A stretch of DNA of 64,000 nucleotides from NCBI RefSeq assembly GCF_006345805.1, contig NC_043024.1:6262001-6326000 (forward strand), written 5' to 3'. Below are positions 1 to 51,794 of this stretch, one piece after another. This stretch comes from Octopus sinensis (taxonomy: Eukaryota). Under the pieces are notes generated by a model that was not told where the DNA came from, ran no database searches, and saw nothing but the letters and a program-made list of their open reading frames with translations. A program made the translations under genes and the position numbers. Numbering within the stretch: the first letter of the stretch is position 1; every line of letters begins with the position of its first letter.

Positions 1-163
1 TTGGCTACACGCGGGTGGAAGGGGCTGTTTGACACAATCGTTTCATTCACAAATTGAATTCGGTTGATACCAGTTGCGGATTCTAGCTCGCTCTGATACT
101 GAGTTGAGTTGGTGCCTTCTGGTATCTCAAAATTCAATATATAATCATTTATGATTATAGTAT

Positions 164-268
164 TCTACGCTGAAGAGAAAAGAAGTTCGGTAAGATAGAA
201 TTATTTAATATTTATATTTAATTCTTATGCTTTCCTAAAAACTTGATTTCGAAACGTACGTCCGTGGA
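164..268 (+). ncRNA. Type I hammerhead ribozyme, predicted cleavage after GUC (C262)
   Basis: Stem I UCUACG(164-169)/CGUGGA(263-268); core CUGAAGA (170-176); long imperfect stem II gaaa...uuuc (177-250); GAAA (251-254); palindromic stem III CGUACG; UC (261-262). Confidence 0.85.
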
Positions 269-760
269 TAACTAAAAAAATGTATGATAGATTGCAGTCA
301 ATTCATTCCTCTCTTACCTGTTTGTGTCTGCCCTTCCAAATGCTGTTTTTACTGAGATCTCCCTTTTTAGTAGAAGAAATAGCTATAACCCTTTGACTGC
401 TATTTCTAAATTCGGTATGTGGTAAGGCAACTCGTTTGTAAACCTTATGCTTAGTATTACTTAAATTTTCCTCGAATGAGGCTTTTACATGCCGAAGACT
501 ACTTGGTGTAATTGATAATTTTTCCAAATTAATTAATTTGCACCCTTCATTATTACGGAAACCATATTTTATCTCAGTAGATGACCACAGCATCTTGTTT
601 TGGCTACACGCGGGTGGAAGGGGCTGTTGACACAATCGTTTCATTCACAAATTGAATTCGGTGATACCAGTTGCGGATTCTAGCTCGCTCTGATACTGAG
701 TTGAGTTGGTGCCTTCTGGTATCTCAAAATTCAATATATAATCATTTATGATTATAGTAT

Positions 761-866
761 TCTACGCTGAAGAGAAAAGAAGTTTCGGTAAGATAGAATT
801 ATTTAATATTAATATTTAATTCTTATGCTTTCCTAAAAACTTGATTTCGAAACGTACGTCCGTGGA
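761..866 (+). ncRNA. Type I hammerhead ribozyme, predicted cleavage after GUC (C860)
   Basis: UCUACG-CUGAAGA(767-773)-75-nt stem II with aaguuu/aaacuu and agaauua/uaauucu pairings-GAAA(849-852)-CGUACG-UC-CGUGGA. Confidence 0.88.
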
Positions 867-1355
867 TAACTAAAAAAATGTATGATAGATTGCAGTCAAT
901 TCATTCTCTCTTACCTGTTTGTGTCTGCCTTCCAAATGCTGTTTTTACTGAGATCTCCCTTTTTAGTAGAAGAAATAGCTATAACCCTTTGACTGCTATT
1001 TCTAAATTCGGTATGTGGTAAGGCAACTCGTTTGTAAACCCTTATTGCTTAGTATTACTTAAATTTTCCTCGAATGAGGCTTTTACATGCCGAAGACTAC
1101 TTGGTGTAATTGATAATTTTTCCAAATTAATTAATTTCACCTTCATTATTACGGATAACCATATTTTATCTCAGTAGATGACCACAGCATCTTGTTTTGG
1201 CTACACGCGGGTGGGAGGGGCTGTTGACACAATCGTTTCATTCACAAATTGAATTCGGTGATACCAGTTGCGGATTCTAGCTCGCTCTGATACTGAGTTG
1301 AGTTGGCCTTCTGGTATCTCAAAATTCAATATATAATCATTTATGATTATAGTAT

Positions 1356-1463
1356 TCTAGCTGAGAGAGAAAAGAAGTTTCGGTAAGATAGAATTATTTA
1401 ATATTTAATATTTAATTCTTATGCTTTCCTAAAAACTTGATTTCGAAACGTACGTCGGGTGGA
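1356..1463 (+). ncRNA. Damaged hammerhead copy in unit 3
   Basis: Reads tctag-ctgagaga...gaaacgtacgtc-gggtgga, so core and stem I are disrupted (real mutation or sequencing error). Confidence 0.5.
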
Positions 1464-2419
1464 TAACTAAAAAAATGTATGATAGATTGCAGTCAATTCA
1501 TTCTCTCTTACCTGTTTGTGTCTGCCTTCCAAATGCTGTTTTTACTGAGATCTCCCTTTTTAGTAGAAGAAATAGCTAGAACCCTTTGACTGCTATTTCT
1601 AAATTCGGTAGGTGGTAAGGCAACTCGTTGCTAAACCCTTATTGCTTAGTATTACTTAAATTTTCCTCGAATGAGGCTTTTACATGCCGAAGACTACTTG
1701 GTGTAATTGATAATTTTTCCAAATTAATTAATTTCACCCTTCATTATTATGTATATATATATACATAAACATGTCCCTCTCTGTATAGTAGTGCATGTGC
1801 GCATGCACACATATGCACATACAGGTACACACATAAACACACACAAACACATAGATAGATATACAGTCGTTGATGTATTGAGTGTATAGCACACATCTAG
1901 CACACCCATGTATATATATATATTATATATATTATATATATATATATATTATATATAAGAGATTGATAGATAGATTGTCAGCATTATATAGCATTACCTG
2001 ATGTAAAATATAATATATATACATATACGTATATATAATATATATATATATATATATATATATATATATATATATATATATATATATACACACACGTATA
2101 CAAGAGATAGATAGCTAGAGATATAATTAGCATTAATTTGTGGTTCACTTCATTATATCTACCTGCATGAACATCACAAGTCATTTAGTTTAGCTCTTGT
2201 TATTGTTATTGTTGTTGCTGTTGTTGTTGTTGTTGCTGTTTAGCGCTGATTGAGCAAAGCTATGATCAGTGCTATCAAGCCACGACCATCCTGTCTCATA
2301 TTTCTTTTAGAAAGATGTTTAAGGTCTTAGGTTATAATTCGGGAGGTATTTCTGGTTACTATGTCTAGCAGGTGGCTATACCACAATTCTACCAAGACTG
2401 CTTTGTGACAGTCATATCA

Positions 2420-2890
2420 CTCCACACTGTACAGACACCACCATCCCCGCTTGCCACCAACCTCACCACCATCATCATTACTACCGCTACCACCACCATC
2501 ACTGTCACTACCACTACCACCACCACCACCACCACCACCACCATCATTGCCACCTTCGCCACCATCACCATGATCTCCACTATCACACCCCACGACGACC
2601 ACCACCACAATAATCGTACCCCCCCCCAATAACAACAACAATATCACCATCAACATCAGTAGCAGCAGCACCACCAACATCAACACTATATTACTATCAG
2701 CAGATGTATACTTCATCAGAAAGCATCATTACTGCATCCTGCAATGCCACACTCCTGCACACACACACCTCATCCACCGCTATCACCACCACCACCAACA
2801 CCACCACCAACATTAATATCAGTCCCCCACCATCGCACCCTACCCCACCACCAAGCATCTACTACTGCTGCTGCTGCTGCTGTTAATAGA
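2420..2890. repeat. (ACC/ACT/AAC/GCT)n trinucleotide low-complexity tract
   Basis: Directly visible. Similar tracts lie at about 10800-11030, 21040-21230, 31550-31790 and 33330-33620. Confidence 0.9.
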
Positions 2891-3319
2891 CATACTCAAG
2901 AGACTAATCACCATGACTACCAAGGGTTGCACTGTTGTTTCTTAACAAGTGTGAACCAATTATAGACACATCCGGGGTGTGTGTGTGTCTGTATATATAC
3001 CTATATATCTATATTATGTATACATACACACACACACATATATATACACATATATACATAGAGTACTGCCACAGTCTAATGATTGAAATAAAACAGTTTT
3101 ATGATGTTTCATATTGAGATGCTTTTATTAAATTCATTCAGTTGTTAAACATAAATAAATCTTGGAATTAAACGGTTTTGATTTACTGTCAGGTGACTTT
3201 TGGCCAAACCTGTTTATATATATATATATATATATATATATATCTATATATATTTATATACGTATGTGAGCGTGTGTGTGTATATATTATATATATATAT
3301 ATATGTATGTATGTACGTA

Positions 3320-49883: not shown

Positions 49884-49937
49884 CGAGAACGTACGTTTCA
49901 AGATTAGTCAAAACAAACCATTTCTATCATCGGCTCA
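49884..49937 (-). ncRNA. Variant hammerhead motif (CCGAUGA core, GUU site)
   Basis: The minus strand reads UGAG-CCGAUGA-uagaaaugguuuguuuugacuaaucuu-GAAA-CGUACG-UU-CUCG. Confidence 0.5.
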
Positions 49938-50398
49938 GAATTCCTTGGTTTGGATTTGGAAACACTGAAAATAAAACATACCCTTTCGAAGATCTGCTCC
50001 CAACTAACAGTGCCAACAATTCAAAATAAGCCGCGAAGAATCTCTGTTCTCCCCTTTCCCACCAGCGTGGGTTAAAATCATCAACACTATGCTTATTTCG
50101 TTAAAATCCGAAGCATTGAATGGTCCCTTTGCATACTGACACACTTGGTGAAATTGATTAATAATTAATTAATTTGGCCCTCAATTGTTGAAATTATAAT
50201 TAATCTCCCTCTGATTAATGCTTCGGATTTTACCGAAATAAGCATAGGGTTTGATGATTTTAACCCACGCTGGTGGAAAGGGGAGCCAGAGATTCTTCGC
50301 TGCTTATTTTGAATTTGTTGGCACTGTTATTTGGGAGGCAGATCTTCGAAAGGGTATGTTCTTATTTTCAGTGTTTCCGATCCAAACCAAGGAATTTC

Positions 50399-50448
50399 TG
50401 AGCCGATGATAGAAATGTTGTTTTGACTATTTGAAACGTACGTTCTCG
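50399..50448 (+). ncRNA. Variant hammerhead motif
   Basis: UGAG-CCGAUGA...GAAA(50433-50436)-CGUACG-UU-CUCG; the 3' side of stem II is altered. Confidence 0.45.
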
Positions 50449-50940
50449 AATAACCTTAGCATTTGATTTTTCGATGTCCTTACCTACCCACCAAACTTTT
50501 GTGAGTTGAATTAAGTCAAACACTATTATGAGAGAGATTTTCTTAAGTATTCGAAATAGCCTTAAAAAAGTTTTTTAGCTGCTATTTCTAATGAGTTCAG
50601 TAATGCGGCAAAGTAATTTATTTTACTAAGCCCTGTTATTAATGTAATAATTTGAATTCGCCTTGAATGGTCCCTTTGCATACTGAACACTTGGTGAAAT
50701 TGATTAATAATTAATAATTTTGCCCTCAATTGTTGAAATTATAATTAATCTCCCTCTGATTAATCTTCGGATTTTACCGAAATAAGCATAGTGTTTGATG
50801 ATTTTAACCCCGCTGGTGGAAAGGGGAGAACAGATTCTTCGCTTGCTTATTTTGAATTTGTTGGCACTGTTAGTTGGGAGCAGATCTTCGAAAGGGTATG
50901 TTCTTATTTTCAGTGTTTCCAATCCAAACCAAGGAATTTC

Positions 50941-50992
50941 TGAGCCGATGATAGAAATGTTGTTTTGACTAATCTTGAAACGTACGTTCTCG
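50941..50992 (+). ncRNA. Variant hammerhead motif (U4C, GUU site)
   Basis: UGAG-CCGAUGA(50945-50951)-stem II-GAAA(50977-50980)-CGUACG-UU-CUCG. Confidence 0.55.
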
Positions 50993-51481
50993 AATAACCT
51001 TAGCATTTGATTTTTCGATGTCCTTACCCCCAACTTTTGTGAGTTGAATTAAGCAAACACTATATATGAGAGATTTTCTTTAAGTATTAGAAATAGCCTT
51101 AAAAAAGTTTTTTAGCTGCTATTTCTAATGAGTTCAGTATGCGGCAAAGTAATTTATTTTACTAAGCCCTTTTATATAATGTAATAATTTGAATTCGCCT
51201 TGAATGGTCCCTTTGCATACTGAACACTTGGTGAAATTGATTAATAATTAATTAATTTTGCCCTCAATTGTTGAAATTATAATTAATCTCCCTCTGATTA
51301 ATGCTTCGGATTTTACCGAAATAAGCATAGTGTTTGATGATTTTAACCACGCTGGTGGAAAGGGGAGACAGAGATTCTTCGCTTGCTTATTTTGAATTTG
51401 TTGGCACTGTTAGTTGGGAGCAGATCTTCGAAAGGGTATGTTCTTATTTTCAGTGTTTCCAAATCCAAACCAAGGAATTTC

Positions 51482-51533
51482 TGAGCCGATGATAGAAATG
51501 TTGTTTTGACTAATCTTGAAACGTACGTTCTCG
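51482..51533 (+). ncRNA. Variant hammerhead motif (U4C, GUU site)
   Basis: Identical to the 50941 copy; GAAA at 51518-51521. Confidence 0.55.
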
Positions 51534-51794
51534 AATAACCTTAGCATTTGATTTTTCGATGTCCTTACCCCCAAACTTTTGTGAGTTGAATTAATTAACA
51601 AACACTATATATGAGAGAGATTTTCTTTAAGTATTAGAAATAGCCTTAAAAAAGTTTTTAGCTGCTATTTCTAATGAGTTCAGTATGCGGCAAAGTAATT
51701 TATTTTACTAAGCCCTTTTAATATAATATATAATATATATTATATATATATATCTATACTATATATATATATTATATATATATATGATATATAT

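Follow-up and report, generated by a model that had tools for sequence, protein, structure and literature searches.

We analysed a 64,000-nt stretch of the Octopus sinensis genome (the window; contig NC_043024.1, positions 6,262,001 to 6,326,000 of the forward strand, with all positions below counted from its first nucleotide) that holds three arrays of a non-coding repeat, the units of which carry a hammerhead ribozyme (HHR) motif or a derivative of it. Briefly, monomers were delimited from one predicted cleavage site to the next, aligned with MAFFT and placed by BLAST against the whole window; Tandem Repeats Finder, run with a maximum period of 500, skipped all three arrays, and repeat finding together with BLAST was used instead. 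A first-pass annotation of this DNA had put the arrays at 1–1747, 43857–45400 and 49060–51720 with units of 540–600 bp. These positions were essentially borne out, as family sequence was confined to 1–1749 (array 1), 43855–45407 (array 2) and 49054–51734 (array 3), with monomers of 596–598 bp in array 1 and 541–548 bp in arrays 2 and 3 and a unit GC content of 33–35%. Array 1, on the plus strand, comprises 2.93 sense units and continues past the left edge of the window; its sense 3' end reads ...cattatta and is followed by tgtatatatatata.

Units were colinear across the arrays, with the hammerhead motif at an equivalent place in each. Identity between array 1 and arrays 2 and 3 was 43–46% with conserved islands inside, in keeping with the strong divergence that had been noted earlier, compared with 76–80% between arrays 2 and 3 and 88–97% among copies of a single array. 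By sequence, the family is made up of two deep subfamilies, array 1 on one side and arrays 2 and 3 on the other, the latter two standing ~20% apart. An element previously described as constant proved to be so: GAAACGTACGT occurs 11 times, once per unit and in the arrays only, against a chance expectation of 0.42.

Copies of one array differ mainly by 1-nt insertions or deletions (indels), and the first two monomers of array 1 are separated by 11 indel events and 1 substitution. This pattern suggests uncorrected long-read consensus errors in all three arrays, and 'defects' confined to a single copy are therefore not to be over-interpreted. An assembly gap of 100 N (47816–47915) lies between arrays 2 and 3, 2408 nt to the right of the former and 1138 nt to the left of the latter, and touches no unit; its flanks are mutually unrelated and are bridged by no other copy in the window. 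Since the gap falls outside every unit, it affects only the distance and linkage between arrays 2 and 3, which are an estimate only, and the anatomy of no array.

The units appear to be non-coding, as had been claimed. Their longest open stretches (113–117 codons) are antisense and differ between copies, no open reading frame (ORF) is conserved between copies, and a comparison of the longest array ORFs with Pfam and with 5.8 billion proteins gave neither a domain nor a homologue. Nine ORFs of the window submitted to Pfam gave no domain. No reverse transcriptase or GIY-YIG endonuclease ORF was found in or beside the arrays, where stops occur every 15–80 codons in all six frames; as no ORF lies in the units or nearby, the element is non-autonomous, the property by which metazoan non-LTR retrozymes are defined (PMC7229834; preprint 10.64898/2026.07.22.740005). 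LTR-like (long terminal repeat) ends were not found, and no search aimed at a primer-binding site or polypurine tract was made.

The hammerhead motif in the two subfamilies

Array 1 carries three copies of the motif, all on the plus strand. Copy 1 (164–268) forms a 6-bp helix I (UCUACG/CGUGGA) next to a CUGAAGA core, with predicted cleavage after C262; copy 2 (761–866) aligns over the full length of the Rfam model RF00163, with predicted cleavage after C860; and copy 3 (1357–1462) has a 5' half upset by single-base indels (tctag-ctgagaga) and an intact GAAACGUACGUC, a disturbance that could be assembly noise. Two of the three copies, in consecutive units, are complete. Their helix II opens with a G10.1-C11.1 closing pair and continues through 4 bp, a 2x2 internal loop and a long imperfect hairpin (span 74–75 nt), followed by GAAA, a helix III of the form AC[GUAC]GU (A-U, C-G and a GUAC loop) and the cleavage triplet GUC. 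The minimum-energy fold recovered helices I and II. Helices of 6, 4 and 2 bp with a palindromic loop equal the 'canonical metazoan' HHR, which has a helix I of 6 bp, a helix II of 4 bp and a helix III of 1–2 bp with a palindromic loop and forms dimers in tandem repeats (PMC4209133).

The Rfam check proposed in the first-pass annotation did not return a hammerhead at gathering score. The best match, copy 2 of array 1 (model positions 1–45 of 45), scored 17.9 bits with E = 0.047 in a 131-nt search, against a gathering threshold of 34. This low score is due to an insertion of ~71 nt in helix II, which is the only feature penalised. Judged from its sequence and predicted pairing, array 1 holds a credible and complete type I HHR, the helix II of which is unusually large.

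Array 2 has one complete motif in each of its two arms, on opposite strands, with helices of 4, 4 and 2 bp and a CUGAUGA core in both. In the minus-strand motif (44028–44079), helix I pairs as UGAG/CUCA, helix II is closed by G·U and contains a single A×C mismatch, and the triplet is GUA, with cleavage predicted between 44032 and 44031. The plus-strand motif (45074–45125) combines a 4-bp helix I with a helix II of GAGA/UCUU, again closed by G·U, a helix III of AC[GUAC]GU and the triplet GUA, with predicted cleavage after A45121. The array 2 hammerhead is, on these features, a weakened version, and gave no Rfam match even in an 86-nt search. Array 3 has moved further from the consensus. Its representative motif (50941–50992, plus strand) shows core CCGAUGA, helix I UGAG/CUCG and triplet GUU, and further motifs lie at 50399–50448 and 51482–51533 (plus) and at 49884–49937 and 49336–49387 (minus). 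Four copies share the core CCGAUGA (U4 to C) and the fifth reads ACGAUGU, positions 10.1/11.1 form a U×U mismatch, and the minimum-energy fold is not hammerhead-like. A variant with a U·U closing pair is weakly active in the axolotl HHR_Amex2 (PMC7229834). Because of the non-consensus core and the U·U pair, array 3 is probably weak or dead, and this subfamily has probably lost most of its ribozyme activity. The earlier statement that a CUGANGA core keeps a constant position therefore holds for two of the three array 1 copies (CUGAAGA) and for both complete array 2 copies (CUGAUGA) and fails for array 3.

Covariation in helix I had also been claimed, and was observed as paired changes between array 1 and arrays 2 and 3 at 2.2-1.2 (C-G to A-U) and 2.3-1.3 (A-U to G-C); a third compensatory pair lies in helix II at 10.3-11.3 (A-U to G-C). 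The closing pair 10.1/11.1 runs from G-C in array 1 through G·U in array 2 to U×U in array 3. Furthermore, the 8-nt palindrome ACGUACGU lets two copies form a continuous intermolecular helix III. A predicted homodimer with an 8-bp ACGUACGU helix kept helices I and II and an unpaired core, and gained about 11–12 kcal/mol over two monomers. Such a dimeric mode is known for newt, axolotl and Penelope-like element (PLE) hammerheads (PMC4209133, PMC7229834).

Whether the motif might be a chance resemblance in an AT-rich repeat was considered with a strict descriptor, which asked for a CUGANGA core, helices I and II of no fewer than 4 bp each, GAAA, an A-U pair followed by one further pair, and UH. 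The descriptor matched five times in the window, compared with 0.025 matches expected per simulated 64 kb, and three of the five matches were in arrays 1 and 2. The other two (at 9136 and 34466) show that it can fire on unrelated sequence, which, like the lack of a gathering-score match in Rfam, speaks for chance. Set against this are the homologous position of the motif in subfamilies that have diverged by 55%, its invariant 3' half, the three compensatory pairs, the end-to-end alignment with RF00163 penalised only for the helix II insertion, and the agreement of the helix lengths and palindromic loop with the published metazoan consensus (PMC4209133); chance resemblance is thus hardly credible.

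The two descriptor matches outside the arrays are both on the plus strand. The match at 9136–9187 (CUGAAGA; helices of 4, 4 and 5 bp; cleavage at UC) lies in the loop and one arm of an inverted repeat with 46-nt arms (9038–9083 and 9154–9199), and is probably coincidental, since it is single-copy and its helix III belongs to the inverted repeat. The match at 34466–34539 has a 6-bp helix I (CTATCT/AGATAG), core CUGAUGA, a 6-bp helix II spanning 62 nt and a weak helix III (A-U, U·G) with H = A, and is a single copy between a piece resembling a short interspersed nuclear element (SINE) and a retrotransposon-like coding remnant. Other Rfam matches on kilobase stretches were spurious and microRNA-like, and fell on two palindromic junctions and on low-complexity DNA.

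Head-to-head arms and their termini at (TA)n tracts

The description of the loci as three tandem arrays stands as far as the repeats themselves are concerned, and requires revision for arrays 2 and 3, which are not simple tandems. As placed by BLAST, each consists of a minus arm and a plus arm that meet at their 5' ends and have their sense 3' ends pointing outward; as a consequence of these inverted arms, four of the eight motifs in arrays 2 and 3 are on the minus strand. In array 2, the minus arm (43855–44612, 1.38 units) ends leftward in a 'short' terminus, ...cccttttatata(at), adjoining (TA)n at 43814–43860, and the plus arm (44606–45407, 1.46 units) ends in a 'long' terminus, ...caattgttgaaat, adjoining (AT)n at 45401–45630. 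At the inner junction (44606–44612), the arms overlap by 7 nt and meet at unit positions ~517 (minus) and ~34 (plus); the junction cuts one hammerhead, of which only the 3' half is present (about 44570–44612). In array 3, the arrangement of the ends is reciprocal: the minus arm (49054–50117, 1.95 units) ends leftward in the long terminus ...caattgttgaaat beside (TATC)n(TA)n at 48947–49060, and the plus arm (50113–51734, 2.99 units) ends in the short terminus ...cccttttaatataat beside (AT)n at 51721–51794. Here the overlap at the inner junction (50113–50117) is 5 nt, and the unit positions brought together are ~312 (minus) and ~209 (plus). In both loci, the arms meet at unrelated unit positions.

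The sense 3' ends fall at two unit positions only, ~196 and ~293 nt downstream of the hammerhead cleavage site. The long terminus closes the plus arm of array 2 and the minus arm of array 3, and the end of array 1 (...cattatta) is homologous to it, within 5 nt in the alignment. The other two arms, minus in array 2 and plus in array 3, close with the short terminus, ...cccttttatataat. At both head-to-head loci a long end is therefore matched with a short one, which amounts to an extension of ~97 nt on a single side. The termini lie 12 and 19 alignment columns past conserved hairpins (columns 169–196 and 261–300), a relation that we regard as a lead only. Each of the five sense 3' ends in view, among them the right end of array 1, runs directly into a TA-rich microsatellite, compared with a 4% share of the window for perfect (TA) runs of at least six repeats. 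The (TA)n tract at 43814–43860 would be the target at the left end of array 2, with partner tracts at 45401–45630, 48947–49060 and 51721–51794.

No homology was seen between the flanks of the three loci, which indicates three independent insertions. A segmental duplication as the origin of arrays 2 and 3 was rejected for the same lack of homology between flanks. A SINE-like element of ~180 nt occurs at 21 places between 3347 and 57121 (for example 43480–43700, 45651–45825 and 47230–47400) with 67–94% identity, and many of its copies end in (TG)n or (TA)n tails. Two such copies flank array 2 tail-to-tail and are 84% identical, compared with 94–96% between the arms of the array. Therefore, these copies are bystanders, and the idea that array 2 is a piece of a larger palindrome that includes them was rejected on the same figures and on the number of SINE-like copies (n = 21). 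The (TG)n(TA)n tails of the flanking copies probably supplied the array 2 target.

The head-to-head form could in principle be an artefact of assembly (chimeric or fold-back long reads) or a fold-back inversion of ordinary tandems during replication. Several features would suit this explanation: the inner junctions overlap by 5–7 nt, as in template switching; copies differ mainly by the 1-nt indels typical of an unpolished long-read consensus; a scaffold gap is 1.1 kb away; and structures of this kind are known to cause assembly problems (PMC8557442). However, two loci that differ in inner junction and in unit number show the same architecture, their outer ends stand in reciprocal order (short/long in array 2, long/short in array 3), the arms differ by substitutions as well as indels, and they are not mirror-symmetric, unlike a read-level fold-back. 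We consider such an origin very unlikely.

Folding of the unit RNA

Circularised monomers of the sense (HHR) strand folded more stably than dinucleotide shuffles (z = -6.1, -3.0 and -5.9), with 60–65% of bases paired, and the antisense strand gave z of -3.0 to -3.7. RNAalifold on six monomers predicted 112 pairs, 21 of which stay paired despite changes on both sides. This compares with 3–5 two-sided changes for slid partners, 11.0±2.3 for within-pair shuffles, and 12.2±3.6 (maximum 20) for column-shuffled alignments in which the structure was re-optimised. The consensus energy was -59.2, compared with -25.1±5.3 for column shuffles (z about -6.5 to -9), and the antisense alignment was weaker (-47.1, 79 pairs). 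Helices with two or three compensatory pairs are formed by alignment columns 76–85/369–378, 158–168/243–252 and 455–461/521–527, and a conserved hairpin, AGAAAUAGC...GCUAUUUCU (971–1002 on the plus strand in array 1; 51089–51126 in array 3), has a stem that is invariant across subfamilies and a loop that varies. According to these models, the RNA structure of the HHR strand is conserved across subfamilies despite ~55% sequence divergence.

The fold and the termini both bear on the possibility that the arrays are an inert satellite or minisatellite with a relic hammerhead, changing only by unequal crossing-over and replication errors and having no RNA stage now. The non-consensus core of array 3, the disturbed third copy of array 1, the small number of loci in view (three) and the near-identity in substitutions of copies within an array, as local homogenisation predicts, would all fit this picture. 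Against it, the same two termini lie beside (TA)n at three loci with unrelated flanks, which unequal crossing-over would not give; the fold has been kept, with compensatory changes, through 55% divergence and is stronger on the HHR strand; and two successive units of array 1 carry a fully canonical HHR. An inert satellite is unlikely in our assessment.

Class assignment and proposed mobilisation

Overall, we read the three arrays as insertions of a non-coding, non-autonomous family of metazoan non-LTR retrozymes, with a unit of 541–598 bp and one type I HHR, which is most likely mobilised in trans by a PLE; we give this reading a probability of about 0.7. That the element is a non-autonomous retroelement of the metazoan retrozyme or Penelope-like kind had been proposed in the first-pass annotation, and is supported by the shared termini at (TA)n, the inverted arms, the one-end extension and the conserved fold. 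PLE insertions characteristically include partial tandems and an adjacent inverted 5'-truncated copy, often have a tail at one end only and target (TA)n or other microsatellites, in which target-site duplications are unreadable (PMC8557442). Arrays 2 and 3 show all of this signature (partial tandem, inverted 5'-truncated arm, one-end extension and (TA)n target), and in array 1 the tandem and a (TA)-rich 3' flank can be seen. In vitro, purified PLE protein cuts and extends both DNA strands at AT-rich sites, reverse transcription begins at two internal positions of the RNA that lie downstream of the HHR, and hammerhead cleavage is dispensable for insertion (PMC11167929); the features of the arrays agree with this behaviour.

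The units resemble known metazoan non-LTR retrozymes, which are low-GC tandem repeats with a type I HHR and highly self-paired circular RNAs, for which PLEs are the candidate mobilisers (PMC7229834). Families of this class have been described from coral, mussel and axolotl, and historically as newt satellite 2, Schistosoma Sm-alpha and the cave-cricket satellite (PMC7229834). The octopus repeats share with them the non-coding, low-GC tandem organisation, a single type I HHR per unit, the absence of LTR and ORF, the short helix III with a palindromic loop (which implies dimeric cleavage) and the self-paired unit RNA, and the U·U pair at the base of helix II in array 3 recalls axolotl HHR_Amex2 (PMC7229834). 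They differ in unit length (541–598 bp compared with a typical 170–400 nt, PMC7229834), although consensus lengths of 51–972 bp have been given for retrozymes (preprint 10.64898/2026.07.22.740005); in the helix II of array 1, which is ~75 nt long instead of a 4-bp stem with a small loop 2; in having no recognisable tertiary contacts between loops 1 and 2; and in their short arrays (1.4–3 units per arm), two of them head-to-head. Plant LTR retrozymes are likewise non-autonomous and ribozyme-bearing and of similar size (circular RNA intermediates of 600–1000 nt), but only these have type III HHRs within LTRs, a primer-binding site, a polypurine tract, 4-bp target duplications and a GC content above 55% (PMC4918200).

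With PLEs, the arrays have in common the partial tandems, the inverted 5'-truncated copy, the one-end extension and the AT-rich or (TA)n targets (PMC8557442, PMC11167929), as well as a type I HHR with a palindromic helix III and two putative internal reverse transcription start sites past it (PMC11167929, PMC4209133). The termini lie ~196 and 293 nt from the cleavage site, compared with ~90 nt in the Anolis element, and the sizes of helices I and II are nearer to those of 'canonical' metazoan HHRs than to the minimal PLE variants (helix II 7–8 bp, helix I 4–5 bp; PMC4209133, PMC8557442, PMC11167929). Unlike autonomous PLEs, the units have no reverse transcriptase or GIY-YIG ORF. They might nevertheless be 5'-truncated insertions of an autonomous PLE that comprise its pseudo-LTR region only, with no separate family involved, given that type I HHRs are found in PLE pseudo-LTRs, which insert as partial tandems accompanied by truncated copies in inverse orientation (PMC4209133, PMC8557442), and that vertebrate retrozymes are sister to these pseudo-LTRs (preprint 10.64898/2026.07.22.740005). 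This is disfavoured because complete units adjoin head-to-tail with no ORF remnant at any boundary, at three loci and in both subfamilies; moreover, the repeat period of a PLE would contain an ORF of ~3 kb, and no reverse transcriptase or endonuclease ORF is found beside any array. We rate truncation of an autonomous PLE as rather improbable.

Several observations weigh against the reading as a retrozyme family mobilised by a PLE. Nowhere in the window was a PLE reverse transcriptase or GIY-YIG ORF recognisable. For arrays 1 and 3, the longest antisense ORFs were used as protein bait and found no homologues, and a metagenome scan with GAAACGTACGTNCNNNNATAAC returned 13 matches, all of them chance and with no core upstream, so that neither search yielded a further copy of the family. 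Rfam found no RF00163 hammerhead at gathering score in the whole window, and at E ≤ 10 none on kilobase stretches and none in arrays 2 and 3; helix II of array 2 closes with G·U and its helix I has only 4 bp, and array 3 departs from the invariant hammerhead core. The covariation effectively compares two independent lineages in an alignment of ~45% identity that is also the source of the structure itself. The extension between termini (~97 nt) exceeds the PLE tail of 30–40 nt, and the (TA)n-preferring PLE clade of the literature (Naiad) is without canonical HHRs. Finally, the assembly is visibly noisy at the level of 1-nt indels between copies, and has a gap close by.

Other transposable-element remnants were seen in the window, and exact-product look-ups of their ORFs found none on record. 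A 249-aa ORF at 28338–29087 (plus strand) resembles reverse transcriptases of non-LTR retrotransposons over their C-terminal part. Pfam gave no domain for the ORF itself, which has 311 homologues at E ≤ 1e-10, several with PF00078, from ctenophores, mantis shrimp and many marine samples. The ORFs at 24625–25131 (plus, 168 aa) and 52934–53431 (minus, 165 aa) are mutually alike (...KPDIVLIEKENKLCWIKDIACP... and ...RPVIMIWEREKNLCTVVEISCP...) with no Pfam match, and from their sequences look like the tail of the same transposable-element protein. A tandem array at 54986–56087 has ~13 copies of a ~55-nt piece, CACATGGTTCCGGGTTCAGTCCGACTGCGTGGCACCTTGGCCAAGTGTCTTCTAC, alternating with (TA)n of variable length; the piece resembles the tail of a tRNA-derived SINE, and ARAGORN found no tRNA at 54986–56087. 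At 5835–6014, a 66-nt unit (GCCAGTGCCACCTGACTGGCTCCCATGCTGGTGGCACGTAAAAGGCACC...) is repeated 2.7 times, a short tandem of a dispersed-repeat fragment.

For mobilisation of the retrozyme family by a PLE, the following sequence of steps may be proposed. The arrays would be transcribed as multimers, in which the HHR would cleave after GUC (array 1) or GUA (array 2). Because helix III consists of 2 bp and a palindromic GUAC loop, cleavage probably needs two neighbouring copies paired through ACGUACGU as a dimeric HHR. Monomers may then be circularised by a host RtcB-type ligase. A PLE endonuclease/reverse transcriptase would nick (TA)n DNA on both strands and begin reverse transcription at either of two internal RNA sites, the template being either a re-ligated circle or an uncleaved multimer, since HHR cleavage junctions are read through in the DNA. 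The outcome would be partial tandems with variable 5' truncation that meet head-to-head.

It is possible, if short of probable, that the head-to-head loci preserve a complete PLE-type scar for a purely non-coding hammerhead element. The parts of this scar, each held just as tentatively, would be priming on both strands at (TA)n, two fixed internal starts of reverse transcription, read-through of the cleavage junction and variable 5' truncation. Reverse transcription might, on this still doubtful account of the scar, start ~196 and 293 nt 3' of the cleavage site, in each case 12–19 nt downstream of a conserved hairpin.

The family is not described in the literature consulted on retrozymes of cnidarians, bivalves, insects, amphibians and other vertebrates, and a detailed octopus repeat annotation mentions Penelope-like elements and not hammerheads or retrozymes. 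It looks like a new family of a described class, and no new class of element. Animal retrozymes are an abundant source of small circular RNAs, the mobility of which has been inferred mostly from co-occurrence with PLEs and, in frogs, from kinship with PLE termini. In this window, integration scars can still be read in the internal 3' termini that recur between loci, the inverted arms truncated at the 5' end and the (TA)n targets. In addition, two deeply diverged subfamilies help to separate constrained RNA elements from neutral sequence, and the three arrays offer a natural ribozyme series, from canonical with a giant helix II (array 1) through G·U-weakened (array 2) to core-mutated (array 3), which is suited to asking how much the ribozyme adds to propagation. 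Should the scar prove widespread in the genome, it would provide direct non-vertebrate genomic evidence that retrozymes are mobilised by PLE machinery. It would also indicate that reverse transcription begins at internal RNA recognition elements and not at ribozyme-generated ends, and the blocks common to the diverged subfamilies would then be the signals for recognition and initiation by the reverse transcriptase.

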